DNA from: Lepidodermella squamata
Taxonomy: Eukaryota; Animalia; Gastrotricha
Direction of reading: 5' to 3'
NCBI GenBank assembly: GCA_047495785.1
Contig: JBLDXI010000009.1
Location: 3,038,001 to 3,102,000, forward strand
Length of the DNA stretch: 64,000 bases
The stretch's first letter is position 1; each line of letters opens with the position of its first letter. Below are positions 19,940-48,549 of this stretch, in pieces. The notes under the pieces are model-generated. The model had not been told where the DNA came from, made no database searches, and saw only the letters and a list, made by a program, of their open reading frames with translations. A program made the position numbers and the translations under genes.

Positions 19940-22548
19940 ATGAAATTACTGGAAGGCCCTAAGAAGGGCTTCGTCATCGTCGACTATTTCCTACTCCTCG
20001 CGGCAGTGACTGGCAACTGCCTGGTATTGGATAGTATCTCAAAATTACGCTTTGGCCTAACTGGTTATCGCCATTTTCTCATCTCCCTTCTCGGTTCTGA
20101 TCTCTTCATTTGCGGGGTAAAATTTATAAAAAATTATCTCAAATTTGAATTTTAAACGATAACCAAAATACAGGTGAATTTGATATCTTTCGTCTATCAA
20201 GCAGCTTCAATGTACACTGCTAAAAATGACTTCGCGAAACTTGGCGCTGATATCATCCGAAGTCTTCAACTAACCGGTTTTGTAGGTAAGGAATACATGA
20301 GTAACGCTTATTTCTCTATCATTAATCGCTTCGATTTCGTAGCTAATCTGCTTAATCTTAGCGGCATGAGCCTGGATCACTACATCGGCATAGTAAGCGA
20401 TTCAAAAATATTGAATTTTAAATGTAATTCAATGTTGAAATTGCTTGCAGATCAATCCTCTGCGATACAATCAACTGTTGTCGAAGAAAGCCGTTCGCAT
20501 CGGGGTTGCAATGATTTGGATAGTTTCTTTCACGCTCGGCTTCGCTGACTTCACGATATCGATAGTTCAAGACATCCTAGCGACTAAATGGCGGCATAGG
20601 ATGATTTCAGACACCCTATCATTGGACTCTTTCAATGGATCAGGCGGCACCAATGAAACAATCAGTTCAATACTCGCGTTGATCAAGCTGTTCACGGACA
20701 AAAGTGGAATGGTTGGCAGCACAGAGCCGCCTCTTGATTATGACGAGGCGTATTCGTTCAACTCAAGTGAGTTCATTGCGTAGTACAACTATTTGGCACA
20801 AACATGCGTCTGCTAATTAGGTTCGTCACATGAAGAGCCGTTCGACCTGCAAATGCCTGACAGCAGCCAAGAAGATATGGCAGGCGATCAAAGTAAAGAA
20901 ATGCTCGCAATGCTGCTCGCTCTACTTGAGGAGCTGCTAAAGTCATCGAATAGGTATCGTTAGTTAATTTATCGAGAAACATACCTAATTGATTGAGTGA
21001 AGCAGCTCATCCACGCCGGACGGTGGCGAGATTCTTGATTACCTACTCCCGCCAGATGGAAACGAAACTACGGTTCTCGACCAGCAGGCCATCCTTGAAC
21101 AAATAATTGCTATGTTAGCCGCTAGAAAAGACGGCAAAAGTAAGGCAAGTTATGCAAAAGGAGCAAACAAAGTAAATTTATATATACTATAACTTGACAT
21201 TTTGTTCACTGAGTCACGTGTTTTTCCAGGTCTGGCTTGAATTTGCCGTCATGTCACTCACCCTGAGTTGCGCCATCTTCCTCAGCTTTTGCTACGGCAG
21301 AATATTCCGAGAAGTAGGTCAAATTGTCAATATTCCAATTTGCTTACATCCTGTTTCATTCAGGTTTCAATCAGAATGGGAGGATCCCCTGGGACAAACA
21401 CGAGGCGTGTCGTGATTACAACTTTCCTAATGCTTGGATCTTTCACAATTTGGTGAGAATTTGTAGTAATCCTTTATGACATTTATCGTGGATTTTGTAG
21501 CTGGCTTCCATTTATGAGCTTTGAGCTCATTATGATCTACGAAATTCGTACACAAGCCATGGATTTAATACAATCAACCAGCTTTTTCGCTATTCATAAT
21601 GCGGTATGTTTTAGCGAGATTATCGTTCTCGTCATCGATTAATTGAGACGTTTTTCTTTTTACAGTTCAACACTTTGCTGATGTGCTCGCCACTTTTAGA
21701 TCCGATCATTTACGCGTGGCGCATGCGTGTTGTTCGCAGGTTTGTCAAACTTCCGATATAGCTCTGGCGTTCAGATTGCGAGCTAATCACGGGTTATATT
21801 TAGATACATCCTTGTGCGATATTTTCGGTGCTTTCCTTGCACTCGTGATATCGCGGACCGCGTTCGAAGCCGAAGCAGCTTTATTTCCTTCGTAATGACC
21901 GGCAGTCAAACGGCGCGCAGTTCGAGCTCCCGAAGCAGCTTTTACATCCAGGCAAGAAACGTGCTGAGCGGTGTCTATTTCGAGCGTGGTTCTTCGTTAA
22001 AACGCAGTAACTATGAATCATGTCTACGCAGATCTCGTTTTTTACGCGAAGGCATTGCCACTACAGGTAGAACAGCCAGCGCCGGAAATGGATGCCTACG
22101 CCCGATAAACGATGCTCCGGTTTTCCACAGTTTCGACCTGAGTTCAGTGTGCCGATTCATAGATGACCCTGATAGCGACGTTGAAGAGCCGCAGAAAAGC
22201 AGAATTGTCGGACGGACAATTTTAGCGAATCAACAGCTGCATAACAACCAGAAGCCGCACTTCGGCAATTTCCTGTCGGTGCCAGGTCGGGGCAGAGAAG
22301 ATGAGGAGCTGCTTCTACCCCCAGCTTCAGTACAGCGATGCCTGACTCCTCCGCCGAGGAACGTCGGAAGCTTCCTACCGACATCCCCCTTGACCCCGAT
22401 GTATTCGTCCCGCCGATCATTACAACCGAAATTTCCTGACAGCGATTCTGTCCTGGCGCATTTTCGAGTTAATTCTTTCCGCCTGTTGGGTGCGGGGGCC
22501 TACGGGCAGAGTTCGGTGACGCTGAATTGTCCGACAATAAACCATTAA
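19940..22548 (+). CDS. Orphan class A (rhodopsin-like) GPCR, array member G1
   Basis: Multi-exon: LEGPKKGFVIVDY, GNCLVL (TM1), GYRHFLISLLGSDL (TM2), NLSGMSLDHYIGI/INPLRY (TM3), IWIVS (TM4), WLEFAV..CYGRIFREV (TM5), CWLPF (TM6), SPLLDPIIYAWRM (TM7), long C-tail. Confidence 0.88.
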
Positions 22549-22829
22549 CTGTTTTTCTTGCTTGAATACGCAAAATAAAAACATATTTATTTATCCTGTA
22601 ATAATCCAAATTGAAACGGGATTTGAATTATGGCTCACGATGTCCACTAATCCCGTGTGATCTGCAAGTCCAGTAGTTCTTAGTAATCAGATACGGAGGT
22701 GTAAATAATCACCGCGATGATCAATCATACGCAGCGTTGTTGCCTAATACCGTGGGGGCGCTATATCGTGAGCTTATGGCTCAGTGCCCGCCGTTGCCGT
22801 GACTAAGCACCTTGGAGATCGCAGCACCT

Positions 22830-22836
22830 TATAAAA
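22830..22836 (+). promoter_or_regulatory. TATA box candidate for secreted-protein gene P1
   Basis: TATAAAA starts 66 bp upstream of ATG 22896. Confidence 0.4.
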
Positions 22837-22895
22837 CACGATGGTTTTAGACCTACCTCACCGCTATTCGTAGTAGCTCTAGGAAAATTTGCAAC

Positions 22896-23374
22896 ATGCC
22901 GAAGCAAGCTCAATATTTGATCGTCTTTGTTAGTCTGTGCTTTACATCAGCTAGCTCAAACCTTTTTAGCTCAAGTTATCCATCTCAGCCCCTCGGCTTG
23001 ACGTCCTCTTTGACTAAGAATGCGATCAATGCTAACAGCCGTCCATTAACGATTATGGAGAGACAAATGACCAACTTAGTTAAAGCCCTAGCGACTAGGA
23101 ACGCTGCTTCATCGTCAGCAGAAAAATTCGCCAACAAGCTTGCCGAGGTATCCAGCCGGTTGTGTGTAGCATGCTTCTCTGTAAGTTTTTTCAAGCAAAT
23201 CAACGATCGCATCACTTTCAAATGTGTTATCCACAGGGAAATACTGCAAAGCTTCTTCATTGCCTGAGTCAACCACCTATGGGAGGCAGGGTCAGAATAA
23301 TAAAATTACGCTGCCCCGTGAAATCCAGACAACTTGCTGATAAAGTCTCCAATTGGCTTACTCAAGTGAATTAA
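22896..23374 (+). CDS. Secreted 4-Cys precursor P1 (140 aa), unrecognised family
   Basis: Exons 22896-23180 and 23237-23374 (intron GTAAGT...CACAG). Signal-peptide-like MPKQAQYLIVFVSLCFTSASS. C-terminal KLAEVSSRLCVACFS/GNTAKLLHCLSQPPMGGRVRIIKLRCPVKSRQLADKVSNWLTQVN*. AATAAA at the stop. Homologous to P2. Confidence 0.8.
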
Positions 23375-23731
23375 ATAAAAAATCATACTAGTTAATGATA
23401 AATTCTTCCAACTTTTATATCGCGGTGAATCAAGTACCTTGACTGAATTTACGGTTGCGCACCGCGAGCTGAATGATGAAAGCTCTTTGTGCGGGAAAAA
23501 CACTCAAAGGGCGCGATTTTGAGCCTAATTAAACGTGATAATCGATAAAAGCATCCGAATAAATCAAGTGATTGTTGCGGAGAAATAGTGAGCCGCCGCT
23601 TTCCTAAAAAGCTCACATTCACACACATCAGTGCTTCTTTTTTCAAAAGCTACATATCCCATATTGACTCTACAGGTTAAGTGTGAAATGCTCGATTAGA
23701 GAAAGTTTTCATTTCTACATGTCCGCTTACG

Positions 23732-25864
23732 ATGTTTCTGAGTTCTTTCAAATTCGTCTACGATGTGGTTGTTTCTGCTGCCTCGATACTTCTGAATGGC
23801 CTCGTGGTCGCCAGTGTGTGGAGCTCAAACTTTGAGCCGAAAGGATACAGAAAATTCCTGATCTGCCTCGCCTTCTCGGATCTTTACATTGCCAGTGTGA
23901 ACCTCGGCTATTTGGTACATCAAAACTACCTGCTAGAAATGTACATTGCCGGCGAAATTCGAACTTGGGATTTGCAGTATATTTTTCGAAATCTCCAGCT
24001 TACTGGATTCTTGGTTTGAATCACGATTGGGGATCAACTAAGATTTTTGTGATATTATTTTGATTAGGCCAACCTCCTGTCCCTTGTGGCAATGTCGACT
24101 GATCACTTCATTGGAATAGTAAGCAATTATCAGAGAACAGCCTCCTTTAACTCAGGTCTCGTTTTTTTAGATGTATCCCCTTCACTACAACACGGTAGGA
24201 TTCTTAAAATCCCTGCCAAAATATATGAGAAAGATCTATTTTACAGTACCTTCGTGGTCGGACTTGTAAAATCGTTATTGCCATGATCTGGGTCTCAGCA
24301 TTCGTCATCGGTTTGTTTATTAGAGATGACAGCTAATTTGCGAAAAATGTGACATTTTCAGGTTTCTGCGACGTTTTCATTCACGCCGTATCGGGTGGTT
24401 TGCAACTTAATTGTTTTCCTGATATCTCCTCGGAATACGTCGCTAAATTCGGAGAGGATGATTGGGAAGTGTTCTTTCGCGAATCTGAAGCTGAAACCAC
24501 TCCTGGTCTTTCGAAGAAAGAAAATACCAGCTTCATTTCCTTGCTCAATACTTCACTATCAAGCTTCAGCCGAACAGTTTCAACTCCAAGGTCACGGAAC
24601 GCAACCTCAACGCCGAGGAGGTTTGACTTGAATTTGAGTGAATTAATTCAGTCTTTAGTCGATGGAAACTTATCCAACACCGAGAGGGTTGATGTCAATG
24701 GGAGCATCATGCCCGCTGAATTGAAAAACCGCATAAACAAAGTTATGCAGATTTTCAAGCCGAAACCTGCCGAGAATGTGACATGCGCAGATAACAGGAA
24801 GGAGCAGCAACCGTATACCCTTGAATTCGCGGTAATTGCGATGACAGTGATGTGTCTAGCCTTCCTCATCGTTTGCTACGGTCGAGTGTTTAAAGAGGTG
24901 ATTTATGAAATTCGCGCTTGCATACTTGCATAAAATTTGATTTGATTATAGGTATTTCGAAACCATCCTTCAATCAGGAGTTTGAGGAAGCTAGTACTCA
25001 CAACGTGCCTCCTACTCGGTGCTTTCAGCATATGGTTTGTTTGACCATCAGTTTTGAGATATATTGATCACCTTTTTTATTCAGTTGGTTGCCTTTCATG
25101 AGCTTTGAGTTCTTCATGTTCCTAAGCCTGGTTAATCAAGTGGGTTCTCAGAACGAGCCGTCAACATCTCAGTTTGTTGAAGCTTGATGTCATTTCATGT
25201 TAAATAAGAATGATTTATTATGGCAGTTTTCTCTCTGTCCACGGCATTTTCCACAGTTTATTGATGTCAGCACCGTTACTTGACCCACTAATATACTCGG
25301 CAAGGTTGCGCACCATACAAAGGTGAGACTTTCATAGAAATTCTCCAATTCTGAGACATTTTTGAGATTTTTAGACAAATACTGCTGCGATTGGCTTGTA
25401 TACTGCCTTGCTGGGAAAAAATGATCCGGCTCGGAGCTATGACTCGTACTTCTCTCCATATGACTTTCTCAGTCACGTCGATCAAAAACCTAGTAGCCCG
25501 CGATAACCTTCCGAATTCAAAGTCATTTGACGTTGATATTGACGATGGCTTCATCGATGATGGTGATGCATTGGAAGTCAGTGCGGTCGATGCTCCATCA
25601 ACTCAGCGTAACTCAAGCTTAGCTAATAGCCCGCGTGGTTTCTACGAAGTAGCTGTTGTCGAGCCTCACATTCCTGACCACGAATTACCGCCGGCTATTT
25701 ACCGAAAGTGTAGCCGTTTCATGCTGATGTTTGACGGCGTGCACTCACTTGAATCTTTCACAAGCGCGCTTAGCCACCGAGATGCAGTTTACAAGCCGCC
25801 TCCTACCAGACGGGGATTCCATTTCGGTGATAATCACAGAAGAAGAGAATCGTTTTGTCATTAA
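23732..25864 (+). CDS. Orphan class A GPCR, G2
   Basis: The spliced model stays in frame: NGLVV, GYRKFLICLAFSDL, SLVAMSTDHFIGI/MYPLHY, LEFAV..CYGRVFKE, CWLPF, APLLDPLIYSARL. Confidence 0.86.
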
Positions 25865-26923
25865 ATTTCGAAATAAATAAACATGTTGAAATAGCGCTGG
25901 TTTAAAGGTCATGAACTTCGCCTATTAATGTTTACAGGTGTTCCGCTGCTCATTAGATGGCTGGGTCAGATCCCTTCTATCAGATGTTAGCCTCGACATA
26001 CAGAATCCAAATTTAAATGGAAAAGCTGCTTATAGATTATCCCATGTACCAAGAACGAAATAATTTTTATTTAGCCTTTGAAATATTCTTTAAGCAAACT
26101 GCATTTTGTATTATTATAGCCCTTTTTCGTTGGAATTCAATCATTACTCCTATTTACTTACAAATCGGAATCGGGAATTACTGAATCTAGATTGCCAAAT
26201 CTGAGCGCTGAAGCTAAGAACCTGAGTTCAATATTGTCTTCTCTTTCCAATGCCGAAATTGGCAAAGCAACATTCTCACTCAATTAACTATAGTTCGCAT
26301 TGAAATTCAGGGTAAATAGTATAAACATTTATTGTATGTCTTTGAAATTTGGCTACGACTCTATCCGTGTCACACCAACACCCCACGAAGTGTATGTGGG
26401 CGAAGTAGACAATGTGCGAGTGACGTCAGTTCAGGTGAGATCTAATCGCTGAGTGACGTTCGATATTGAATGCCGCTTTTGTCCCCCAATAAAGTGCTAA
26501 CTTAAAATCGATTCTTTTCCTAAAAGTTTATTGCCATCTAAGTGTTTCGGATCACTGAGAGAAGTGCGGAAGCAAATCGCGAGGGAGGGAGGAAGGAAAG
26601 AATATATAAGTCATTCTCGTTCTGCCCCTCGAGCACGAATGTCATTCACATGTTTCGAATTCGTTCCCCGAATTGGATCATGATAATACTGCTAACTTGG
26701 GAGATCGTGTTTGCGCTTCATATGACAATCCTATAGCCGGCCCCAGGGCTGAAAGGTAAAGCAACGACGTGTTGTCATGATTAATCTCGCTGACATCATC
26801 AACACTGTAACTGAATTACGGAACCGACAGGTAAATTAAAGTGCATGCCCCGAATCAGAGACCGGGTATATTTCGATGGTTACCCATTTTCTTTAGTTTC
26901 ACCCACCTTCCAAATATAGAGAA

Positions 26924-28528
26924 ATGATTTTACTGAATGATACTGGCGAATTCTTCCTCTACCTGAACTGCATTGTTACGATCATTGCCATCGTGGGCAA
27001 TTTCCTCGTCTTGGATTGCATTGTGAGAAAACGCTTCGGCCTACCTGGTTATCGGCGATTTCTCATCAATTTGATTGCGAGCGAACTTTTCCTCTGTGCG
27101 ATAAATGGCTGCACATTTGTCTACCAATTTGCTACTGATAACTCACCAAGTGCAGTATCAGTCACATGTGGAGGACATCTGCTGCGGAATTTTCAACTGG
27201 CCGGCTTTCTCGCAAATTTGCTGTCACTTGTGGCGATGTCAGGTGACCACTTCATAGGGATTTTATATCCCCATCATTATATGAAGGTAATTATATTTTT
27301 GCTCTCATAATTGCGCCAAAAATCGATTTTTCAGATTCTGAATCATCACTCTGTGACTACAATGATCGCGGCGATTTGGCTGTGCTCACTTGCCGCTGGG
27401 TTGATTGATATACCAATAGCATACGCGTTTTTCTTGCGATTTAAGGAAAAATTGGGAGAGGAATCGCGACATCCCACTTTTGGATTTGATGAGACTGATG
27501 ATGTCCCAAGTGATCAGCCACCAGTCTCGGGTTGCAAATCTGGGGCGCCGGGGCCTGTCGGTCTCATGGCCTCCTCTCTTGCGACCTCATATGAAGATCC
27601 GTTCTCGGCAATGGTTTCCGATTCCGATGTTACTGAGGCTGATATTATGTCTATGGTAGAAGATTCCGTTCGCTGCGAACGCCAAAACTCAGAGAACGGT
27701 TCAGATGCCGATGCTTTCATGAAAGCTTTTTTGATGCTGGTCAACGACCAGGAAGAACTTCATTTCTGCACCTACTATAGTTCGCGGAAAGTATGGGTTG
27801 AGCTTATCGTTTGCACTCTGACCATTTTGTGTCTAATCTTTCTTATCGTGTGTTATGGCCGAATTTTTCGTGAGGCATTTGCAAAACTTAATCTGAGCGA
27901 GCGTGGCTTTCGCAAACTCTTTCTCACCACTTTCAGCTTCAGTGGAGCATTCGCGGTCTGCTTTCTGCCGTTCATGATATTTGAAATAGCTCAACTAGCT
28001 GTGGCGTACGTGGCGAAACTGACCGGACGTGATGTGCACTACGTCGATTCGCCTCAGAAGTACTTGATTGCTCAGAATGCTATGTACTCCTTACTACTTT
28101 TATACCCTGTTTTCGCTCCGATGATCTACGCCGTTCGCATGCGGATGTTTCGACGATTTGTCATCCGGAAATATGGCCGCATTCTTTGCTGCAGATCAGA
28201 TGACAGGCCTGAAGAAGTTGTCGGTCCGGAACAGGGGGAACAGGCCCTCGTGAGGTCGGTTACGGCCCCAGATCGAGGCGAAGTGGATTATAGGTCGACT
28301 CAGAACAACTATGACGCATGTGATTCTCTGGAAATTCTGTCATTTGATGACGAGGAGCATTACGCGCTGAGGCTGCAGCAAAGCAGGCAATATTCGGCGA
28401 CGATTGACGACCGTGACTTGGACAACATAGCAAACAGGGCAAGCACCGCCTCTGCACCTGGTGCTTTCAAAAGCCACTTGGTTGTCAAGCATCAGGATCA
28501 ACCCATGGGCAGACTTTCAGATGTCTGA
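26924..28528 (+). CDS. Orphan class A GPCR, G3 (single coding intron 27287-27334)
   Basis: GNFLVL, GYRRFLINLIASEL, MSGDHFIGILYPHHY, FCTYYSSRKVWVEL..CYGRIFRE, CFLPF, YPVFAPMIYAVRM. Confidence 0.9.
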
Positions 28529-28740
28529 AACTAACCCAAATTTAACTCAATTAAACTGATTGTGTCAAAAGCAATTTGTCTCAATTAACTAGGGTCTCGA
28601 GAATCCTATTAAAACATGTTGTAGCGCAATAATTGACTTTGTCCGATTATATAAGACATTAATATCCGACAATTTTTTAATCGGGCGATGAAAATATTTT
28701 GCACGCAGAATTAGTTCGAAGAAGTGTTTCATCTTGAACA

Positions 28741-30426
28741 ATGGCTAGCGAAATTTTTGACGGCCCCAAGGGTGGGTTTGTCATTTTTGACTACGTAATA
28801 TCAGTGTTGTCAGCCATCACAAATCTGCTGCTGTTGCAAGCTGCAAAGGGTGCCCGATTTGACTTGAGGGGCTACAAAGTATTCTTCACGAGTTTGCTGG
28901 CGTCAAATCTGTACCTGAGCTTTACGAATATCGGAATTTTCCTTCTTGAAGCGGCGTTGTTACTAATTCCAAACAGGGAAAATATTTTCATCCACTGCAT
29001 GTCGAATATCACCCGCAGCCTTCAGCTGGTCGGATATTTCGCGAATATGTTCAATTTGGCCGGAATGTCCGTCGATCACTTCATAGGAGTGGTAAAAACT
29101 ATATCCCTCTACCTTAATACAAATAATTAATCATTATTTCTTAGCTCCATCCATTGAAATATGGCAGGCTGGTAAAATCGAGCAGGCCTTTAGTTTATGC
29201 ACTATGGACACTAGCTATAGCTATGGGCTTTTTGGACTACCCTGCTTCGTTAATCGCCTACTTCAACTCTGCGAGGTCTATCGTGAAACCTAATATTACA
29301 GCTTTGGAATCAGTAGACAATGATTGGAACGACTTGCAGAATCTGACCAGGGACGAATTGGAGGACGTGCTACGGTTTTTCAAAAACGCCTCGCAGTCTC
29401 ACATGAGGTAAAAGTTATTGCTGTACGTAATAACTTCTCTAAATGAAGGTCGATATTTCAATAGGCGGTCGAATGGGAGTGAGTTCCCTGCCATGCTAAT
29501 GACGCTCATGCAACAGGAAGACGGCGACTTCTGCAGCTACCATACTTCAGTCAAGATTTATTTGGAATGTGTGGTCATTGCTGTTACTTTCGTTTGCTTC
29601 TTCTTCCTCACGATTTGTTACGGCAAGGTTTTCCGAGAGGTGCGCCAAATCGCCCACGTTTCTGGCAAAACGCTTCGAAAACTAGTCGCTACAACGTTCC
29701 TACTTCTCGCCACTTTCACGGTAAAATTTTATAGCTAACAACTTGACCCGTGCTCACATTGGATTCGCTCAGATTTGCTGGATTCCTTTTATGGCGATTG
29801 AACTTCACGGGCTGTTATACGTCACTTTGTGGCCTGAAGTTACAACAGCTAGCAGGTTTGATTTTCACCTCACTTGATCGAAATTCTCCGATTGGTTTTT
29901 TCAGCTACGTTTACTTGGTAAACAATCTGTCAAACTGCATGATCGTCTCCTCTCCGTTTTTCCAATCGATCATCTACGTCGCTCGTATGCGTGTCATCCG
30001 GAGGTGAGAGAATTTGAAACTTGAGTCATCAGATGATAGCTGATTTTCTATATCAACAGGCGGATTCTGCAAAAATATGGTCACTTATTTCCGTGCTTGT
30101 CAGAATTGATTACAAAACTGACTACTAACACAACAGGATTAACAGCGTACCTCCGAGCTGATCACCGAAGCTCGATCGATTACAGAGACGGCAGTTCAGG
30201 GGAGCGGCGGTCGGCTCTACGTCAAGAGATGTTACCTTTCGTCTACCGAAGTTCCCCAAACAACGCGTTACCCGCCTCGAAGCGGAGTAGCTCAGCTAAA
30301 GACGGTGAAGATGGCGTGAAAATGAGCATTTTAGAGAGCGCTAAAAAATGGACTGTTGACAATGCTCAACGCCTCCCTTTACCAGCTGATGTAATTCCAG
30401 CTCGTAATGTCCCATCAAATCCGTGA
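28741..30426 (+). CDS. Orphan class A GPCR, G4
   Basis: FDGPKGGFVIFDY, GYKVFFTSLLASNL, MSVDHFIGV/LHPLKY, FCSY..YLECVV..CYGKVFREV, CWIPF, SPFFQSIIYVARM. Confidence 0.86.
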
Positions 30427-30453
30427 AAAACTTTATTATTCATAATAAATTAG

Positions 30454-33179
30454 TTAAGAGTTGGTAACATTTTCTTCCTTCAATGACAGACGATCCGGTG
30501 TTTCAAAACTCCGGCTTGAAGGGAAGCTGCCCATGGTCATTGATTTGGCCAGCATGTCACGCTGCTGTATTTTGAGATAAGACGCCATTTTCTCCATGGC
30601 TATGGGCACCACATTGCTGTCATCATTACGAGTTAAATGTTGTCTTGGAATTACTGTCACACTTGGGAAGTTGAATGGCATGACAAAGAATTCATCGTCC
30701 CCTAGATAATTATCGCTATCATTCGCAACAATATCGCTAGGACTGCTCGGACTCTCGCAGGCAGTGTCGATGTATTCAGGTATGTAGACATCATTGACAC
30801 GGCCGAATAGTCGAGCAGAATTCGCGTAAAATTTGTCCACAACTTCTTGAGTGCTTTCAAATGGGAGAAAGTATCTCCTGTGGTACTGAGAGATGCTGTC
30901 GAAATTTCGCAGCTCTGACAGCGAAAATTCATCGCCAAAGTCTGTTAGACCAGCTTTGCCGTAGTAAACCATTCGATCGGAAACTGACACTGACGACGGC
31001 AGGACGCTGTCCACGTCTGAGTTCATAAACGCCTCATCTACGAATTTTTGGCCGTGCTCATGAACTTCGACCGTGTTACACGGTTGAGTTACCGAGATCT
31101 GGCAAGTAGACCTCGCAGGGGTGCTCATTGTCCTCTCGCGATCTAATAGGCGCTCTTTCAGCCTCTCGAGCCTCAACTTGAGCGTTTGATTACCGTCGGT
31201 ATTCATGCGTCTATTGAAGCTAGTTCTCGCTCCGTTGCTAGTGAAGGACGAGGAACTTTGAACCCGGCTGAAAACTGAGCCAGCGGACCTTTCTTTGAAT
31301 GGTTGTCGCCCTGAGATGCTAGTCATCGTTGTGCCGGCTACGTATTCAGAGAGCGGTACCATACTGCAGCTTTTTACTGATGGGCCGCGACCGTTATTGC
31401 TTTCGTGAAGTGAATTGCGGGAGCTGTAAGGCATAATACTGCTCCGATGACTTCTTTCCCGCAATTTTTCAACGTAATCGCGGCAGCATGGGAAGAGCCG
31501 GCCGTAGCGATAGAACACATTGCGTCGAATAATCTTCATTCTTGCTGCGTAAATGATAGGATCGAAAAGTGGCGAGCTGTGAGAACAAAACGACTTTCCT
31601 ATTTCCAAATTAATGAGTCGGGAAACTTACCACAAAAGCAGCGTATTGAACTGTAAATAATCGGCAAAATTTGCACTTTGAACTTACAAACAAGAACTTC
31701 TACTTACCACATTGTGAAGGGCGAAAAATGTTGCGGACGATGTAAGGGTGTTCTTATCATTGACGTTGAAGTTTGTATGAAGGACAATTATCATCGTAAA
31801 CTCGAAAGTCTGACAAAAGAATGTTCATTAAAGTCTTAATATGGGACTAAAACAAACCATGAAAGGTATCCAGCAGAGAAGGAAAGACCCAAGAAGTAGG
31901 ATGGTGGTCAAAACAAGTCTTCTTACATTTCGCTCTTGTTGATTTGAGAACACCTCTTTGAATATACGGCCATAGCAAACAATCAGGAAGAGGAAGCAAA
32001 CAATAGTCAACCTATTGAGCCATGAAAAGGGTATCAGATATAATGCCATAAGCTATGAACTTACGTCATCACGCAGAATTCCAACCAAACGTTTTCATTC
32101 CTGGCAGCGCACCAACTAGGAGCGGAGGCACTCTCGTCGAAAATTCCCAGAATACTCGTCTCGTCCTCCAAAGACCCGGTATCCATATTATTTGAAGAAC
32201 TAAAAATCAATAACTTATTATTGTCAATTCTTATGAGGTCTAGGCTTCCTTACTCATTAGAGTTGAGAAAGGAATGAAGGAAAGCATCAATGTCAGGTGA
32301 CAATTTATCGAAAAGGTCAGAGTGACCGTCATCTGTCGAATCAGATAATTGTATCGGCGTGGTCGATGGCATCCAAGTTGCTGGCTCGCTCGCCTCCATC
32401 TGCTGCGCGGCCATAACTCGGGCATATGGAGCTTGAAAGCCGATGAAAGAATCCGCATCTGCCGCCGGATTCGAAATCGAAGTTTTAACAGGGCGCATGT
32501 TCGGCTTGATGTCCCGGTTGTTGCTGAATATGTTGAGCAGCGTAGTTAAAATATGCTCGGAGACAGTAACATTCTTCTGCCCAAGCAATGGATTTGGCAT
32601 TAGAGACTCGCTCTGACTTGGAGAGGAGGAAATATCTGTGCTGTTCGTTGCTTGATTGATGTCAGGCCAGATTAAACTGAGCACGTGCAGCCCAGCTGCT
32701 AGGAAGATGTCAACAAATCCAAGAATAAATGCTATCACCCATATCAAAACCAATATGGTGCAGTTAACCCGTTTGCTCATAAACTCGCGATATCTGAGCG
32801 GATGAAGCTAAACAAGGAGATTTTAAACTAATGAATTCGACGGATTAAAAACCCAACTTACGATGCCCAAATAGTGGTCAACACTCATGCCGCAAAGGTT
32901 TAATAGATTCGCGATGAAACCAACAATTTGCAGTATCCTAACAATATCCGCCGTGCACTTGTCCAGTAAAGTGCTGGCGGTGAAGTTGAGGACGTTGATG
33001 AAGCAAATGTATAGATCCGAGCAGATCAGGCTGATTAAAAACCGCCTGTATCCTGTAAGGGCGAACTGGACCCGTAGGACACTGTCAAGGGCTATCAAAT
33101 TGCCAATGATAGCCAGTAGTGAAACAACGTAGTCGATCAGAACATATGGCCCCTTTGGCCCTTCTAAAAGATTATTCAT
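30454..33179 (-). CDS. Orphan class A GPCR, G5
   Basis: LEGPKGPYVLIDY, GNLIAL, GYRRFLISLICSDL, LCGMSVDHYLGI/LHPLRY, WLEFCV, CYGRIFKEV, CWIPF, SPLFDPIIYAARM; C-tail of more than 300 aa. Confidence 0.88.
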
Positions 33180-33914
33180 GGTATCCAGTGCAGACTAAAA
33201 CTGTGTAATAAATACTCTATCTGAAATAGGAATTGACTGAAGTGGCTGAAATTCGATTTACTGCCCAACTTAAGCTTCAGACAGTTTACTATGAAAATTG
33301 AATCAAGGTATGGACGAGTGAGCTGAAGTGAGAAGAAACCGCAGGCTTCGCCTCCTTTATTTGCTAACACCACTTTCCGGAGACAAAAGCGAATGCAACG
33401 AGTCCAATTGTTTTCGTGACTCTTAATTGTTTGCGTGGTGTGTTATGAATATGAGCCATTTTTGGCATCTGGTATCTTTAATAAACGGAGAGTTGCACTG
33501 TATTTGAACTACTAATCATGGTAAACGATAATTTAACCCTGGATAATGCCTTTTCCATGTTCGCTTCACTTTTCTTAATATTCTTTCTCAAGAAATGATG
33601 ATAATCACTTTTCAGTAATCCGCAGAAGTCTCTGTTCGCTGCGGATTTACCTCGAGATTGAAAGGCCCGTGTTTACTAAAGGATCCGTGGGAGTGATTCG
33701 TTTTTTATAGCCGGCGACTCATTCAACCTCACACCTGAGTTGATCCTCGTTAGAAGGAGAAAAAATAAAACCGGAAATTGATGAAATAAAAATACGCGTG
33801 GTCAATGAAGGATTAATGTTAATTTTACTACACTTAGTACCCTCGGAAAACAGCTGCTGAGTTGCCAATTTGCTGAGGTTGCCAAACAGCTCTCTGAAAA
33901 GTCGAGAAACCGCC

Positions 33915-36183
33915 ATGGACTACAGCAGTGTAGCTTTCCCAGACAGTCCTAAAGGATCTTTCGTATTCATCGACTACATCGTGGTAGCTCTGGCCATCAT
34001 CGGCAACATCATCGTGCTGGACAGTGCCCTCCGTGTTAAATTCGACCTGTCGGGCTACCGGCGTTTTCTTATCAGCCTTATTTGCTCAGATTTATACATT
34101 TCCCTTGTTCATGGCATCACTTTTTGCCTGCCATTCGCCAGCCGCTTTATTGGGCCATGCAATGGAGATTTGATTCGCATCCTGCAAATTGTTGGCTTCA
34201 TCGCTAATCTATTAAATTTATGCGGGATGAGTGTTGATCATTACATAGGAATCGTAAGTTGACCGCATACCCCTTTGTATCAGGCTTAATAAGCACTTTC
34301 AGTTGCATCCACTCCGATATCGCCAAATCATGTCTAGACGGAAAACAATCATTACTTTGGCATTAATTTGGATAGTCTCTTTCAGTTTAGGTGAGGAAGT
34401 CGCGGGTTTTAATCATTCAATACACACCCAATTGTTTATCAAAAATAGGTTTCATCGAAGTTTTGCTGGCTTTTGCTTTCCAAGCCGTCGATATGATAAT
34501 ACCTCTAGAGAAGCAAAGCAGCGATGAAATGACAACGCTGGGTCCTGAAATTACCATGAAAGAAGACATTTCAGAATACGATTTTATTAGCCAAGCTTCG
34601 GGGAGCACGAAACTACCTCTAGTTAGCGACAACTTTGATTCAACTCTGCTAGCATTCTTCAACTGGCCCCCATCAATTGACGAAGCTCTCAAATCGATAG
34701 CCAGTGGAAATGAGTTAGCGTCGCGATGCCGTTATAAGTTAATAGAATTTATTTTACTAGTTCTTCGCTTAGCATGTCACTGGAAGAAATCATTGCCAAT
34801 CATACCGGAATGCTAACGATTCTCCCGAACGACATCGGCCCATCAGGATGGTGCGCTATTGCAAAGCACAACGACAACATTTGGCTTGAGTTCTGCGTTA
34901 TGACGTAAAATGCATTTTTTCATCAAACTTTACTCAATGTTATACCTAGATTGACGGTGATCTGCTTTGTATTTCTGATTTTCTGCTATGGCCGGATTTT
35001 CAAAGAGGTAGTTTCTTACAAAAGCAGGAATGACACTAACAAATCGGACCGAAAAATGAAACGCCTCATCATCACCACATTTTTACTACTGGGATCTTTC
35101 ACTCTATGGTAATTTATCGAATTCGATTTCCCAAGAAATTCTATTTCGTTTTTAAAAGTTGGGTACCTTTTGTTACCATCGAGTTCACGATGATAATAAT
35201 CCTCAATAACAACTTCAATGTAACTGATGCATCAACTCTCAGCGAATCAGCAAGGTATGACTTCAGTTTCTCAATACGACCGAATTAAACACTTCTTTTC
35301 CAGCTATTTCGCTTTACATAATGGGGTAAGTGATGTTTCTGCTATCTGAAAGATGAATGCTGATTTTTACTATTACTATTGACAGCTACACACCCTCTTC
35401 CTTTTCGCTCCTCTGCTCGACCCCATCATCTATGCAGCTCGAATTCGAGTTATTCGTCGCAATGCCATTTACAGGTACGGCCGAATGGTCATCTGTTGCC
35501 GAGGATACATCCAACGGCAGGAAGAAAGATACCGCAGGCGGAACAGCTTTATCGGCGCCCAACTCACTATAGGATCAACCACCCCCGGAATCTCGTCAGC
35601 TCGCATGAGCGAAGACCACGACGCTAATGACGGCTTAATACCGCTTTTGTATCGAGTGACTGGAAATCAGGAAACCAACTACGGATCGATAAAAGAGTCT
35701 CTATCGACCAATGTTAGCCGGCCGATTGGACTACACCGCAAACTGACTTGGCTACCATCTGTAAAGAAGAAGAGTCAGATTCCTGATTCAGATGTTCAAG
35801 ATGTAGCTGGTGATAGTAACATTATTGTCCCAAGTGCTACAGCGGAAAGCGGAAAAGTTATTTCGAGGGATTTATCGGCTGGCGATGATGATGTTTTCGA
35901 TTCTACGGATTCAGATTCCGGCTCAACCCCGCAATCGCTCTACCATCTCTCGATAATCGGAGGTGTCTCCGACTTGTTTGAAACCAGTGATGCTTGCCTT
36001 AAACGATTTTTTGCTAACAGCCATAAGCTCTTTAAGGGTCCTGACCTTGATATGATTGAGTCACCAAAGCTAGACATTCTTTCGACTCCATTAATTCCTA
36101 GTCATTTACACAAGTCCAAAACGATTTCTTTATTCCCGTCATATCGCGTAGGTTGTATCTCACCGTCAGCTAAGGAATCTTGA
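33915..36183 (+). CDS. Orphan class A GPCR, G6
   Basis: DSPKGSFVFIDY, GNIIVL, GYRRFLISLICSDL, LCGMSVDHYIGI/LHPLRY, WC..WLEFCV, CYGRIFKEV, CWVPF, APLLDPIIYAARI. Confidence 0.88.
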
Positions 36184-36377
36184 AACTCCTAATGAAGCAT
36201 GTAGGAGGTTTACAAATAAATGTTCATACGTAATGCAAGGTGGACGTTGGTTGCGAATGTGACTCAGAAACTGTATCGAGTTACCAGCGTAAGGCACGTT
36301 TATGCGGAGTAAAGCAGTGCCATCCCCCAATAATTGAAATATCGCTGAGAAATATTAAAAAGTCATTTCGTTAACAC

Positions 36378-36862
36378 ATGTCTCCGTATGTTTTCGGACT
36401 GCTGATTCTTATATGGGCTATGCCAGGATCAGAGCAGCGGAAAGCAACAAAGCTCATACCTACTAGGAGTACCCCTCGTAATGGAACTCGCCCAACACAG
36501 CCAACAATAAACCGAACTGCAACAATACGCAAATCGTCGAAATTATCGCTCCGCCGATATAAAACAACGACCGTTTCTAAGATTCGTGATCATCCCATAA
36601 AGGACTTCAAAAAGACAAACCTTGTATTGGGGCGAATAGCTGATATAACGAGTGGTTTATGCGTGAAATGCTTTCGAGTAATCATTTTAAAATTGATCGA
36701 GCATATATAAGCTGATTTGCTTTTTCTTACTCTCAGGGAACGGACACTCGAAAACTTCTGCGATGCCTGGGAGAGCCGCCCCTTCCCTTTCGCGTCACTC
36801 TGCTAAAAAACCATTGTCCTGATACGATAATGAGAAGTGACTTTTTCTTATTAAACTTCTAG
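36378..36862 (+). CDS. Secreted 4-Cys precursor P2 (141 aa), paralogue of P1
   Basis: Exons 36378-36677 and 36737-36862 (intron GTAATC...CTCAG). Signal-peptide-like MSPYVFGLLILIWAMPGSEQ, then a basic Thr/Arg-rich pro-region with RK, RR and KK. C-terminal RIADITSGLCVKCFR/GTDTRKLLRCLGEPPLPFRVTLLKNHCPDTIMRSDFFLLNF*. AATAAA at ~36898. Confidence 0.8.
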
Positions 36863-37708
36863 CAGTTGTTCAACCGAGTTCAGTGCTTATTTATGGTAAT
36901 AAAAGGATGATATATGCTGTTATAAAACACTGACAATTAATTTGCTATAATAAGTTGCTGATCAGTTTGCTCGAGAATTAGAGCCTCAGGTGACACGATA
37001 AGCCCTTACGAATTTTCACCCGTGTAATTAAATTGTAGTCATTATAAGCCCGGGGCACTTCTCCGATCGCATTGAAGTCCTTATGACCTGATTGTCTTAA
37101 TAATCAGAACAAGCTCTGACAAAATTTAAGAATAAAGCTGCTTTTCAGGGTTAAATTCACAGCCGTGTTCCAGAATACCTAAGTTTCGTATGAAGGCATT
37201 TCACTCTAACGAATTATGCAAGTGACGCCCTTCCGTTGATGAGAAACTTCATGGCTTCCGAAAAGCTCAAAGTAGTAGCAAGTATCGCGCAATTTTTAGC
37301 GAGAAAAATTCGGTTTAGATCGATGTCTAACATCGGAAACCTATATCCACCGGGAACATCGGTTCACGCTTTTGTGCTGCTACCCGGGCCCATCAATCAA
37401 ATTATCCGCAGCGCAGCCTGCGTCCGTCACTTATCGATTTTAATTTTGTAAATATTATTTTTTCGGATGACGCGCTTATATCGAGCCTGGAGTATTCATA
37501 AAATAATTTAACGCACTATTTGGATTGCTTTTTCACTCTATATCTTTTCAATTGATTGCAGCGCTAAGTAACCAATATTTATGATTAAATAGCAACTGTA
37601 TGCTCATATCATTAGAAAAAACTTTTATTCATTTAGACAAATTACTCCCCGAATCTTTGCGCAATGTCTTGATGTAACGCGATATTTCTTGTTTTCAATT
37701 TCGACGAA

Positions 37709-39727
37709 ATGTCGGTCTCTCAGGCATTGCTTGGCGGTCCGAAGGGTTTTTTCGTCCTCTTCGACTACGCCTTCTCTTCTGTTGCCATAGTCGCTATTTC
37801 CCTGGTCCTCAAAGCCGCGTTGAAATGTCGCTTCGATTTGGTCGGCTATCGTTACTACCTGATTTCGCACCTAATAAGTGGACTATGGCTTTCCGTGGTC
37901 AACTGGGCTGCATTTCTATATCAGGGCATTTTCATGCCGCTGTACCTCGGCGGGACTGGGAAGAATTCTGATGCTGTAAAATGTACGGCTGACTTCCTGA
38001 GAAGTCTTCAACTAGTCGGCTATTTCGCAACTCTTCTCAATCTAGGCGCAATGTCATTGGATCACTACATTGGCATTGTAAGTCCGCATTAACTTCGTTA
38101 TACGCGATGTTTATTTTCGTTGTCTCATAGCTCGACCCACTATGTTACGCTAGAGTGAGTTTCTAATCCGTCTTTATCTCGTTAATGAAGAACATGTTTT
38201 TAATCATTTTTCAGTTCGCTAAAGCTAGTAGAAAAATAGCAATTTCCATTTGGATCGCCTCTTCTGTGATAGGATTCTCTGACTATGTTGCAACTACCGG
38301 CATTTACTTGTTTGCGGGCAAAGGAAGTGCTGAATTTGATCCTGTTACCATCAATACGAGCCTATCTAACTTGTCTACGGCCAGCCCTCTCCACATTACT
38401 TTCCGCTATGGTGGACAAACGAAATTCGATAGCCTGAAATGGATCGCAAAGCAAAGCAAGCTGGCCAAAGAAGGAAAGCCAGCTGCAGTTGCCAAGTATA
38501 GCAATTTTTCCAACTATGACCTAGAAAATATGGTCAAAGTCATGTCAAACAAAAGCAGTAGCGATAGGTAGATCTCGTCCGCTGGAAGATTTTGTTTATT
38601 AACTTGTTGTCCCTTTCAGCGAAATGGCTTCAAATGCTGAGTCTATTCTGCTGGATATTCTTTGGGATTCTTTGAATATGTCGATGTCTTCCGTCGTCAT
38701 ATGGCTTCCTGGTAGTCAAACGAGTTGGTGCGGGATACATTCTCGTGGAAAGCCAGTCCTCGAAGTCCTTGTCATGGCGATGACCTTAATTTGCTTGGCT
38801 TTCCTCATCATTTGTTACGCCAGGATTTTTCACGAGGTAATCAAATGTCTGATTATCAGTCAAGCCTTTCTATTTTAGAATTAGGTTCGTGGAGTGGTTA
38901 ATATTTCAAGCAAAACTGTTCGAAAATTGACAGCTACAACATTCCTACTCCTGACAACTTTTGTTCTGTGCTGGACACCATTTATGGTACATCTGAATTC
39001 TTCGAAGCATTGATAACCTAATTTTGACACAGGTAACGGAACTGGTCATGTTAATTTGGATAACATACGTGTGCCATTCGTCTTCCGACACGACATGCAT
39101 GACCAGGTTCACTGATGGAACTGGGCACCAGTAAGCTTCGCCTAATGCATTTTGCTCGATTATCAAATAACTTCATTTTTTTACTACAGAATCTTTTACA
39201 CCCTGAACAATTTCTTCAATAGTGCGATCATTTTTTATCCGCTTTTGAATGCCATAACGTACACAGCTCGAGTTCGCGTTATCCGAAAGTAAGTCTTTAG
39301 TATCATCAGCAACAATTGTTCGTCATTTGTAATCTCCCACAGGCGGATAATTCGCGACTTTGGCCGGTGCTTCCCCTGCGTCAAAACGTATGTCGACAAA
39401 ATGATGAGCGCGCAGAGATCAAACTTATATAATACCTACAAAATTCGGCGAAGAAGTTCCTTAGATAATGCTGCGATGAGCATGGACGAAAAACAGCAAG
39501 CAATCCGGCAAGAACTGCTTCCGTTTCTCTACAGAACCCACCATAGCAGAGCAAGTCTCGCTAGAAAATCGAGTAGCCTCCATCCAGACGGGTCGAACAG
39601 TTTTTACAGTAATATTGTGAAAGCACAGACCAGCCTCGACACGAGGCGGTTAATGGTTGTTGCTTGTGAGGAAGCTTGCATCAAGGAATCGCCTTTCGAA
39701 GATGCGAAAACCAATCCTGTAATCTGA
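37709..39727 (+). CDS. Orphan class A GPCR, G7
   Basis: LGGPKGFFVLFDY, GYRYYLISHLISGL, LGAMSLDHYIGI/LDPLCY, WC..LEVLV..CYARIFHEV, CWTPF, YPLLNAITYTARV. Confidence 0.86.
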
Positions 39728-42021
39728 CTGGAACAGATTTTTCTATGAGTAAAGGAAATAAAATGAATACATTTTTTAAGCTCATTCATACACATAATGT
39801 ATTAAATGAGATTTTTTGCTTGCGTGGAATGGGTTAGAGAGACCACTTATGCCGGCTTGTCGAATGAGATTACAAAAAGCGTGTAATCTGACGCATTGTC
39901 AGATCTGCGTTACCTATTTTGCTGACATTTGATTTAATAATATGTTGTTATTTACGCTCAACATATTTGGATGAACCGTAGTATATGAGCCTCAGAAGAA
40001 CAATTGCTGGAGATCGTTTGCTGCAGCCGGACATTAGCGCACAAAGGGGTGCGATAATGATTGGAATGATGCGTTTTTAAGGATTCGTTTCTGCTATGTA
40101 TCAGCCACACCTCTGATAACTACTTTCCTTGCATTCTACCATGCGTGGTCTTTTATCCCTGATCCAGTATACATTGATCGCAACTTTAACCTAGTATTTC
40201 GTAGAGCAAAATATACGGCTCTCCTTCAGCTACCGACTCTTGACTTACATTTTTAGCATCTCAAAATAATCGTGAGACCTAGAAGGCATACTATACTTCA
40301 CGCACTATAAAATTCAATTTATTTTATAGGCAGGAATGGATTTAAGTTTAAGGTAGCCACTTCCCTTTTATCAGCTTAAAGAGTTTGCTAAATTATTTAC
40401 TGGCGGTTTCCAGTCAATAATTTATCGATCATTCGGTATTCAGCATTATTAGGCCTCGGATTTAAGAAATCGATTGGTTACATAGCTTTTTTGCTGAACA
40501 AATATTATCGTTCAATATATCTTTATCATTACTTCAAAGGTATCATTAAGTATATATTTCTCTCGCTGTGGTGCAATTATCGCAATCATCAGAACAATAA
40601 ATTAAGATACGATTCGCATCTTCCACGGAGCGTCTTTCTTAGCCAAATGCTGACCATAATGCAGGCTCCTTGCCTTGGGCCTAGAATCGGTCAGCGTTAA
40701 TTTGAAAGACTTACTCACAGCCTTGGGCGTTCGTCACGAAACCTTATTTTCATGAATTTTTAATGCTCAAATTTTGCGGCATGCTTCTTAGTTGATAAAA
40801 AAACACAATCTGTCTGCGAATTTATCGATCCAGCTTCCTTCACAGGCCGCATGTTCTTAATTTCAAATCACAGTGGTGTTGCTGTGCCGTATCGCAAAAT
40901 TGCGTGATTTCGTCACCTGATGAAGGGACACCCCTGCATCGCCGCTCAAAGAAACAAATTATATTATACCATTGCGATCGTGCAATATTGAATTAATAGC
41001 CGCACTTGTGTCTTGCTGGGTTCGCGCACGTAAACAAGTTAGCACGGTATGCCCGTACCTGGTGCTGCAGTCGGCACGCGTGAGTGGCTTTCTCTATTAC
41101 CGGTGTTGCCAAGCGGCGCGCACGCAGCAATTTTGCGCCTTTTTTTCTTACCAGCCAGCGCGATGCAAAATAGATTTTTTTACAATTCATCGTCATCAGC
41201 GGCAGCAGTAATAAATTTACATCTTCTAGAAGGGTCGGAGTTGAACTTCTTTACCGGTAGCTTATTACGGCAGCAACTGCTGCCATTTCAAGAAATAAAT
41301 AGCCGTTCAACAATCGTGATTGCTTTATTGTAGATTTTTGCATCATTGCCAGGCCAGGCCAGTACATAGTAAAACATCAGCAAAAAAATCAGTCTATTAT
41401 CGTTTTTTTCACTTCACCCCGCGCCGTAATAAATTTACTGTATATGTCCACATGGCTAAACACGACAAAAGTGATTAGCCGGCAATATATATATCGCATA
41501 CACTACAAATTTATATATCGATGAGCAGCGATAAAAAAAATTTGAAGTTTTTTTGTGTCCAAATTCGTCCCGCGAGATCTGCCGTTTTATTCGCATCGAC
41601 TGAGCTCGGGACTGCTGCGACCCGGTTCTCAATATATGCGCGAGCCCCGATTTGATAAGCAGATGATTCGCTTCACTGGATTATGCGCGTGAGAACAAAA
41701 CAAGCTATCAACACTAGTTCTATACTTCCTCTTATACTCTATTTCACCCACCTTTCTTATTACAAACGTCCTGAATTCGCTTGTGCCAAAGGGACAACCC
41801 TTCTATACCGAATAGGATGAAAAGACTCCATTGATAAACCCGTCTGGCCCTTTTGTATAATGATCGTATTTTTCGAGTGCATTGCAGGTCGATGAATCTG
41901 TCGCTGTATTTACGTATTCTAGGTACTTACATGCCAGATCAGTGTATCATGTCTTGATCTCCATGATAATCCTCGCGTCGATAAATTTGTGAGAGCCTAG
42001 CGCTCGGCTGTCGACACAGCG

Positions 42022-44838: not shown

Positions 44839-45425
44839 CTATTCAGATAAGACTATGCTTTTCGGTACCTTATGATCTCGGTATTACAACCTTGCGTAGT
44901 GATTTTCGAACCGGTGATTCAGGTATTATATAAATTATTTCCTAAAGAAATCATGCGCTTCCAGTTGCGACTGACCATTTGAGTTATTATGCTTTATACT
45001 TACTTGTTTCTCAGCTCTATACCCTCACTCAATTTCCTAATAAATGTTATAAATCCTGGACTGCCTATCTTAATAACTAATGTTGGTTTTTCACAGAGAA
45101 ATGATAAATAATAAAGTCAGCTAATGTGCGCCAAATATTTTGAGAATTAGTACCATATCCTGGCCTGCCGCATGTTTTAATTATATTTCACGTCGATAAC
45201 AGGCACTGTAAAAGACGTGAAGAGCCGGCGAGGCAAAATGAAGCATTAGCATGCATGATTTGCCGCGCATCAGCTCTTTGCATTGACTCTCTGAATGATT
45301 CAATTAGTATTAATGTATCGGCGCGTCGGATGACGCGAAAGACTACCCACCGCGCTACTTGGTTTCGTGGTTTCCGCCACTGAATACAAAAAAATATTAA
45401 CACAATGACATTTTTATGATGCAAA

Positions 45426-47828: not shown

Positions 47829-48152
47829 CAGAGGGTGTAATGCACTTGCAGATTATTATTTTTGTGTCGATATTTTTTCCACACACACGCCATTGCCAGG
47901 ACGTCATGTGGCATATTCGCGCATATGACTCGACGGACGAAGCCATTTGCTATTTTGTATATTAATCCGCCTGAAAAAATCGTGAAAAATAAACGCGTGG
48001 TTTGGCTTACCTGCGTCATGTTGTTTTCTGTAAAAGCCAATTCGGTGTGTCCCGAATCCTTATACCCTGATACGATCAGTTAAATGCGATTTGTGATTTT
48101 TTGCAATTAAATCCGACTTCATTATGCTTGAGCTAAATAGTAGAATTTCTGG

Positions 48153-48424
48153 GCGCGCGCTGATTGGTCAATCGATCGTTGCTATGACTCCCGGATGAAA
48201 CATGTAGGTTGGGCGATCCATTGAATTTTTTGCAACAGGTGTTTTTTGCCGCAGTAAATTGCTACGATTATTATGGGGTTTACGCTCGTGGTCAATGGAA
48301 ACCGTGCAGAGGGTGTGGCAAGGTCATTTTTTGCATAAATAGAAAATAATTTATTAGTGGATTGCACGACTAAATTGTTTCATCCCGGAGTCATAGCAAC
48401 AATAAATTGACCAATCAGCGCGCG
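48153..48424. mobile_element. MITE-like/foldback element (degenerate inverted repeat)
   Basis: The left arm GCGCGCGCTGATTGGTCAATCGATCGTTGCTATGACTCCCGGATGAAACA...CGATCCA (48153-48220) matches the reverse complement of 48358-48424. Weaker symmetry continues inward and outward (~48121-48458). No coding capacity; no target-site duplication identified. Confidence 0.65.
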
Positions 48425-48549
48425 GCTCAAAGTGCTACTTACTACTTGAAACACAATGTTATTTCTTTCCATCGAAACGAGATCATGCACCTAACTAATC
48501 GCAGTGAATAATTTTTCTGACTGTCATCATTTCAAGAGGATTCGAAGAC

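Follow-up and report, generated by a model that had tools for sequence, protein, structure and literature searches.

In the genome of the gastrotrich Lepidodermella squamata, two small genes, designated P1 and P2, are embedded in a tandem array of orphan class A G protein-coupled receptor (GPCR) genes. They are located in a stretch of 64,000 nucleotides (assembly GCA_047495785.1, contig JBLDXI010000009.1, forward strand, positions 3,038,001 to 3,102,000), which was analyzed over its whole length and is referred to here as the window. Judging from sequence comparison, both genes belong to a family of small proteins that had not been described before and is restricted to this lineage, and public sequencing runs show that P1 is transcribed, spliced, and under purifying selection. 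What is new is a real, expressed protein family without detectable relatives in Pfam, the PDB, or the ESM Atlas, the present status of which is that of a well-documented orphan family, not of a demonstrated signaling system. The interpretation favored here, with a probability of roughly 0.55, is that P1 and P2 are functional members of a diversifying extracellular binding or signaling family, one branch of which is hitchhiking in the receptor array. Their position in the array would most likely have arisen incidentally as the array grew in a very GPCR-rich genome, not from a matched pairing of ligand and receptor.

Transcription and Splicing of P1

Three public runs, designated X1, X2, and X3, were compared over window positions 21500-27400, an interval that includes P1 and the receptor gene directly downstream of it, G2. 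X2 covers this interval continuously and is therefore regarded as DNA; X1 covers exons only, a dozen GT..AG introns of the neighboring receptor genes being absent from it, and it is therefore regarded as derived from RNA. X1 and X3 originate from separate studies and carry separate organism labels, X1 being assigned to organism A, and both X2 (DNA) and X3 (RNA) to organism B. Over the same interval, X1 is nearly identical to the window, and X2 and X3 differ from it by ~0.5-1%, locally more. The P1 locus is carried by two close strains or species.

The splicing of P1 that had been predicted from the sequence in the initial annotation is borne out in RNA from both studies. The joint 23180>23237 is present in RNA-derived contigs of X1 (depth 42.9) and X3, and the DNA run X2 is contiguous through the intron. 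Exon 1 is covered by RNA contigs at 22929-23085 and 23092-23180. At the other end of the gene, an AATAAA hexamer (23374-23379) overlaps the stop codon, and the RNA contigs terminate just 3' of it, at 23382 and 23395; in X1, coverage is nil at 22682-22878 and 23470-23666, flanking P1. Because the contigs end past the AATAAA and X1 has gaps on both sides, P1 looks like a short transcript of its own, although contigs cannot prove a separate transcript. The five coding differences in P1 between the runs (positions 23003, 23033, 23135, 23150, and 23350) are all synonymous third-position changes, which argues for purifying selection on the gene.

Gene Structure of P1 and P2

The two genes share a common layout, in which a hydrophobic, signal-like start is followed by an unrelated low-complexity stretch and then by a common domain with the cysteine pattern C-x2-C-x10/11-C-x16-C. 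Exon 1 of P1 encodes the signal-peptide-like start MPKQAQYLIVFVSLCFTSASS, a variable linker rich in S, T, and N, the first helix of the domain, and CxxCFS, and exon 1 of P2 encodes the signal-peptide-like start MSPYVFGLLILIWAMPGS, a linker rich in T, R, and K, helix 1, and CxxCFR (coordinates in Table 1). Since the first exons are 285 and 300 nt long, both introns are in phase 0, one codon past CxxCF; the product reads across the splice site from LCVACFS into GNTAKLLHCLSQPPMGGRVRIIKLRCP in P1 and from LCVKCFR into GTDTRKLLRCLGEPPLPFRVTLLKNHCP in P2. The intron predicted for P2 occupies the same site as in P1 and in three further genes of the family, P3, P4, and P5. A TATA-like element is found upstream of both P1 and P2, and an AATAAA lies 3' of the P2 stop codon at 36898-36903.

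The initial annotation had already described the coordinates of the two genes, their signal-like starts and unrelated linkers, the four-cysteine domain, and the phase-0 introns after CxxCFx, all of which were borne out. Its observation that each gene lies on the + strand, 5' of the first exon of a GPCR gene (G2 at ~23732 and G7 at 37709), also stands, as does the statement that P1 and P2 are the only supported non-receptor genes within the window's part of the array, where a scan for signal-peptide-like open reading frames (ORFs) gave no others.

A Family of Small Proteins at Six Loci

The paralogy proposed for P1 and P2 is confirmed by an independent profile, which was built from 15 family members with P1-P5 left out. 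It scored the spliced product of P1 at 69.3 bits (E = 8e-18), P2 at 54.8 bits (E = 3e-13), P3 at 53.1 bits, P4 at 36.4 bits, and P5 at a weak 13.6 bits, the E values referring to a space of 1e6 sequences, and the alignments of the spliced products are continuous over the splice site. Additionally, a search of the genome with P1 led to contigs C24, C1, and C4, which carry intronless paralogues colinear with the spliced products of P1 and P2. Each of these paralogues is a single ORF, 91-117 aa in length, that opens with a hydrophobic segment and contains the motif LCVxCFxG..RMLxCLxQ.S...R...I[RK]..C. The profile search added a copy with an in-frame stop on contig C20, exon-level matches on C24, and P3 on the contig of the window (C9).

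Instead of the two paralogues initially described, the family comprises at least 18-20 genes, which are spread over six loci of a genome of 121 Mb in 151 contigs. A hydrophobic N-terminal segment and four aligned cysteines are present in every member aligned, and the motif of the family can be written as LCxxCF..CL..R..I[RK]..C[P]. P3, P4, and P5 share the phase-0 intron of P1 and P2, placed after CxxC+2. In the phylogenetic tree, P3-P5 form a clade (support 97/95), P1 and P2 have no well-supported placement, and one clade uniting all array members is neither favored nor ruled out by the approximately unbiased (AU) test, with p values of 0.19 and 0.17. The copy on C20 is likely a pseudogene, possibly a polymorphism instead. 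Two further divergent, intron-bearing copies on C24 (~1252173-1252631 and ~1253189-1253551, - strand) have second exons that are not confidently defined, and one of them may have lost the spacing between the second and third cysteines.

Relatives outside the Genome and Comparison with Known Families

When 1.84 billion representative proteins were searched exhaustively with HMMER, only eight matches emerged (E 1.8e-10 to 3e-6), all of which are unnamed proteins of metagenome assemblies in the ENA. These homologues are 82-134 aa long and have a signal-like start and the same four cysteines; the contigs that encode them are eukaryote-like, with a G+C content of 37-39%, and two of the genes are arranged in tandem. 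On the evidence of these sequences, at least one or two related organisms, as yet unsampled, also have the family. The lineage-specific character assumed in the initial annotation is thus upheld, these eight metagenome proteins being the only homologues found beyond this genome.

Searches for a known family gave no match by any of the approaches applied. A word-index homology search, for which the family alignment served as the query, was without a hit, Pfam searches with P1, P2, and the 15 domain sequences produced noise only, with no hit at E<=10, and comparison of the family profile with PDB sequences gave none below E 0.5. At the level of structure, Foldseek searches of the PDB with full-length and domain-only models yielded none at E<=0.001; a wide VIA-align comparison with 48,161 representatives reached best Z scores of 5.6 and 5.4, both to generic three-helix bundles and below its stated level of helical noise, and searches of the ESM Atlas by shape and by features returned nothing relevant. 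The earlier remark that the cysteine spacing is unlike that of insulin, CHH/ITP, saposin, and defensin therefore holds, with no Pfam, PDB, or Atlas family matching either, and the same searches disclosed no confident match to a known non-ligand family.

Several specific identities were considered and rejected. Saposin-like proteins have six cysteines, not four, and neither a SapB_1 or SapB_2 match nor a saposin in the fold searches was obtained. For the insulin/relaxin superfamily, the pattern C-x2-C-x10/11-C-x16-C stands against a B-chain pair combined with an A-chain CC-x3-C-x8-C, and PF00049 was not matched. The CHH/ITP/MIH hormones likewise have six cysteines against four here, with no match to PF01147. 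Twin CX9C (CHCH) proteins are excluded by the spacings of x2, x10-11, and x16 and by the hydrophobic N-terminus, which proteins of that mitochondrial intermembrane space type lack. The insect chemosensory proteins (OS-D) differ in length and in their spacing of C-x6-C-x18-C-x2-C, and PF03392 was not matched. Finally, a classical neuropeptide or prohormone precursor is disfavored since no dibasic site is kept before or after the domain across the aligned members. The term "peptide precursor" used in the initial annotation does not fit a product without consistent dibasic processing sites around its domain, which is therefore better termed a small secreted protein than a processed peptide.

Predicted Fold and Analogous Systems

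The domain is confidently modeled as a small four-helix bundle. The AlphaFold2 model obtained from 15 sequences has a predicted local distance difference test (pLDDT) score of 82.5 and places helices at residues 2-20, 25-32, 37-47, and 49-59, with CxxC ending helix 1, the third cysteine ending helix 2, and the fourth just past helix 3. Helix 1 begins ~16 residues ahead of CxxC in the model, and the linker is disordered in the full-length model. The net charge of domain and tail together ranges from +2 to +8, and the C-terminal tails are amphipathic and hydrophobic.

Features of this kind recur in several known systems. Insect chemosensory proteins (CSP/OS-D, PF03392) are small, secreted, helical proteins of ~100 residues and six helices, with four conserved cysteines including a C-x2-C pair; the present proteins resemble them in small size, predicted helical character, and four cysteines with a C-x2-C pair, although their domain has ~60 residues. 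Saposin-like proteins are secreted, helical, disulfide-stabilized, often cationic, and membrane-active, with six cysteines and four to five helices in ~80 residues; helices stabilized by disulfides are also predicted for the present family, which has four cysteines. In the mating-type loci of basidiomycetes, pheromone genes lie beside GPCR genes, and this linkage is consistent and tied to the specificity of recognition. Genes for small, putatively secreted products adjoin GPCR genes here as well, but most members of the present family are not linked to receptors.

Two other systems come nearer in their general character. The Er, En, and Ep pheromones of Euplotes are made from small secreted precursors with signal, pro, and mature parts and form a disulfide-locked helical bundle in which the cysteines and core are conserved and the surfaces variable (PMC9542385), which resembles what is predicted here. 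The present family differs in its four cysteines (C-x2-C-x10/11-C-x16-C), its four predicted helices, and its animal origin, and no match in sequence or structure was found. The ESP family of the mouse likewise consists of small secreted proteins, encoded by many genes that are specific to their lineage and evolve fast. ESP1, a protein of 7 kDa, acts via one specific GPCR, and ESPs serve as V2R ligands; the ESP genes occupy a 2.4-Mb cluster of their own beside CRISP genes, and their intronless mature part is thought to derive from alpha-globin (PMC7826187). The ESP sequences are unrelated to those described here, the receptors beside the P genes belong to class A, and a ligand role is only conjectured for the present family. 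The helical, cysteine-rich pheromones of Euplotes and the rodent ESP family are the closest analogues in kind, a comparison of type that implies no homology to either.

The Receptor Array and Its Linkage with the Family

The receptor array extends well beyond the window's end. Initially described as a 40-kb array, it spans ~222 kb (C9:3057952-3280021) and contains, as counted by first-exon matches, 52 or more orphan receptor genes of class A, mostly on the + strand. Genome-wide, this receptor family gives at least 110 first-exon matches, with further clusters on contigs C2, C3, C15, C21, C26, C32, and elsewhere. The array receptors are divergent members of class A (rhodopsin-type), with DHY in place of DRY and DPxIY in transmembrane helix 7 (TM7); the loop that joins TM4 to TM5 measures ~100-150 aa, and the tails 230-390 aa. 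Their match to 7tm_1 is weak, only class A GPCRs occur among their nearest Atlas clusters, and a homologue search with one array receptor gave none at E<=1e-5. In X1, G2 is spliced at GT..AG joints at 24193, 24309, 24895, 25033, 25171, and 25320.

A first look at GPCR candidates across the genome counted 503 matches to 7tm_1, 542 to 7tm_3, and 1192 to ANF_receptor (PF01094), and by this sequence-based count the GPCR gene complement of the genome is of the order of a thousand. Many of the ANF_receptor candidates are single open frames of ~790-860 aa, and such matches suggest that class C GPCR-like genes have expanded to a very large number, mostly without introns.

The array on C9 includes no fewer than five members of the family, P1-P5, of which P3-P5 lie in its far part. 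A consistent linkage between the family and the array receptors, for which the initial annotation had proposed a test, was not found, since only ~5 of the 18-20 members lie in the array, and the members on C24, C1, C4, and C20 and in the metagenomes are without such receptors. In tblastn searches with the receptor exons of the window against 60 kb (C24), 90 kb (C1), and 40 kb (C4) around family members, no copy was detected in these 190 kb; for C20, no array-family receptor appears in the genome-wide match list. The metagenome contigs (L030-L034) contain no class A receptor of the array family, and none within 10 kb of the homologues. Class C-like receptors located 3.5-4.4 kb from metagenome homologues and 10 kb from one member on C1 were dismissed as a link in view of the 1192 ANF_receptor candidates in the genome. 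Nor does the family appear to have been "co-duplicated with its receptors", as had been suggested. The first exons of G2 and G7 are only 29% identical, compared with 43-44% between G7 and G5, G6, or G9, so that G2 and G7 are not nearest relatives and the units of P gene and receptor gene were probably not duplicated as pairs; moreover, the array has ~5 P genes for 52 or more receptors. Across the genome, GPCR genes are common enough that having one as a neighbor carries little weight.

Interpretation and Alternatives

From these features, we infer secretion, disulfide formation, an extracellular binding role, and hitchhiking. The N-terminal signal peptide would be cleaved, a variable and probably disordered linker would follow it, and the C-terminal ~60 residues would fold into a compact, mostly cationic four-helix bundle, locked by two putative disulfides formed from C-x2-C and the third and fourth cysteines. 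The core (L-C-x-x-C-F, C-L, R, I-[RK], C-P) appears to be kept and the surfaces to vary, a combination that would fit a fast-diversifying extracellular binding or signaling protein. The family would have grown by local duplication at several loci, with one branch long resident in the orphan class A GPCR tandem array and copied along with it.

Certain observations weigh against this account. An array that makes up ~0.18% of the genome has retained five or more members that are intact, old, and divergent, which exceeds what is expected from a single chance insertion if the copies are unselected, and in the case of P1, P2, and P5 a receptor gene follows closely on the same strand. Both the persistence and the adjacency can be explained by local duplication in a growing tandem array, for which no functional tie is needed, although one may exist. 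They could also be read as signs that P1-P5 are secreted protein agonists, such as hormones or pheromones, of the surrounding class A receptors, with the linkage kept by co-evolution; a ligand role for P1 and P2 had been supposed in the initial annotation. Five intact members interspersed among at least 52 array genes, the purifying selection on P1, an RNA contig depth of the same order as that of the receptors (contig depth being unreliable), a large extracellular TM4-TM5 loop that could bind a protein, and the orphan state of the receptors, the one searched having no homologue at E<=1e-5, are consistent with such a role. It nevertheless seems unlikely, given that most members (C24, C1, C4, and C20) have no array-family receptor nearby, that the contigs of the metagenome relatives show no such linkage, that ~5 P genes face at least 52 receptors with G2 and G7 not being sisters, that the AU test (p 0.17) neither favors nor rules out one clade of array members, and that the density of GPCR genes makes adjacency weak evidence. 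We regard as somewhat less probable still that the P1-P5 branch, perhaps with more members, constitutes protein agonists co-evolving with the surrounding receptors, as a linked, diversifying recognition system in an animal. If true, such a system could serve mate, kin, or self recognition and would be analogous to fungal pheromone and receptor loci, but with folded helical proteins as ligands. Activation of a neighboring receptor by any member would deorphanize a lineage-specific GPCR expansion and provide a rare animal case of linked ligand and receptor genes; otherwise, the family would represent a compact, predicted two-disulfide helical scaffold of possible structural interest.

A role in host defense, or as other effectors, in which cationic, disulfide-stabilized, amphipathic helical proteins act against microbial or prey membranes and diversify rapidly, is rather unlikely, though it draws on the positive net charge, the amphipathic, hydrophobic C-terminal tails, the multi-copy, fast-diverging, lineage-specific nature of the family, and the location of the C1, C4, and C20 members in islands of other small secreted families. 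The RNA contig depth of P1, at 2-4x that of the neighboring receptors, lies below the level usual for a constitutive effector, even if this is a weak measure; no likeness to saposin-like or other known antimicrobial folds was found, and the retention of one arginine and the basic I-[RK] throughout suggests a specific site over bulk charge. Decidedly improbable is a perireceptor or accessory function, in which small secreted helical binders co-expressed with chemosensory receptors would present or buffer small ligands in the manner of CSPs and odorant-binding proteins (OBPs). The four cysteines with C-x2-C in a predicted small helical secreted protein and the position in an array of the chemoreceptor-style expansion type would suit it, but no Pfam match to OS-D/CSP or OBP was obtained, a ligand cavity would probably not fit into a domain of ~60 residues, and most members lie away from receptors. 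The notion that the P genes are not real, being chance ORFs or decaying fragments, can hardly be entertained and is refuted for P1, which is spliced in RNA and shows synonymous differences only between runs. RNA evidence among P1-P5 comes from the interval around P1, yet cysteine positions and intron phase are kept in five genes, profile scores are strong, and homologues occur in other organisms. The interpretation of P1 and P2 as members of a diversifying extracellular family, with one branch carried along in the array, is the one preferred here.

Feature Coordinates and Neighboring Genes

Table 1. Positions of the P genes, their parts, the adjoining receptors, and further family members (window positions unless a contig is named)
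Feature	Position	Strand	Remarks
P1 gene model	22896-23180 + 23237-23374	+	2 exons; product of 140 aa
TATAAAA box, candidate promoter element	22830..22836	+	~60 nt 5' of the P1 ATG; read from the sequence, putative function
P1 exon 1	22896..23180	+	285 nt, 95 codons; ATG at 22896
P1 intron	23181..23236	+	56 nt, GTAAGT..CACAG, phase 0; joint 23180>23237 in RNA contigs
P1 exon 2	23237..23374	+	helices 2-4, Cys3, Cys4, TAA stop
P2 gene model	36378-36677 + 36737-36862	+	2 exons; product of 141 aa; predicted from homology
P2 exon 1	36378..36677	+	300 nt; profile match
P2 intron	36678..36736	+	59 nt, GTAATC..CTCAG, phase 0; placed by homology, not RNA
P2 exon 2	36737..36862	+	TAG stop; exon-level profile match, E 5e-8 genome-wide
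Orphan class A GPCR array, window's share (12 genes)	19943..57992		weak 7tm_1 match; nearest Atlas clusters all class A GPCRs
G2, orphan class A GPCR	23726..25864	+	directly 3' of P1; multi-exon, spliced in X1
G7, orphan class A GPCR	37709..39727 (end approximate)	+	3' of P2
P3	C9:3271486-3271824	-	profile search; intact
P4	~C9:3267409-3267760	-	search with P3; intact
P5	~C9:3282056-3282430	-	search with P3; intact
C20 family copy	C20:1967452-1967616 (L042:1486-1866)	-	TAA stop just ahead of the domain

Outside the array, the intronless four-cysteine genes at C1:4590001-4680000 (L017-L025), C4:655001-695000 (L026-L029), and C20 (L042) are interleaved with two other undescribed families of small secreted proteins, F2 and F3. 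At least 15 matches on C1 and two on C4 belong to F2, which is recognized by its motifs ARLSDTIFQALKQCS and LTASQCRKLCKSAVSSC. In the F3 family, with at least six matches on C1 and one adjoining the C20 copy, the terminal RIVVTGSFDV..PK directly follows a basic R-x-x-R-like site, an arrangement that looks prohormone-like.

Ion channel genes were also observed in these regions. Three tandem Cys-loop channel-like genes (Neur_chan_LBD, Neur_chan_memb) are found at C24:1258661-1264412 (L013/L014, - strand), 7-13 kb from the four-cysteine cluster on C24, and a polycystin-2-like cation channel (PKD_channel, Polycystin_dom, EF-hand) is encoded in one open frame of 643 aa at L017:7132-9060 (C1:4597132-4599060). 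In the window itself, tandem cytochrome P450 genes occur on the + strand at 4869-6536 and 6947-8521, with uninterrupted frames of 555 and 524 aa, and the nearest Atlas clusters of this pair are CYP3/thromboxane-synthase-like.

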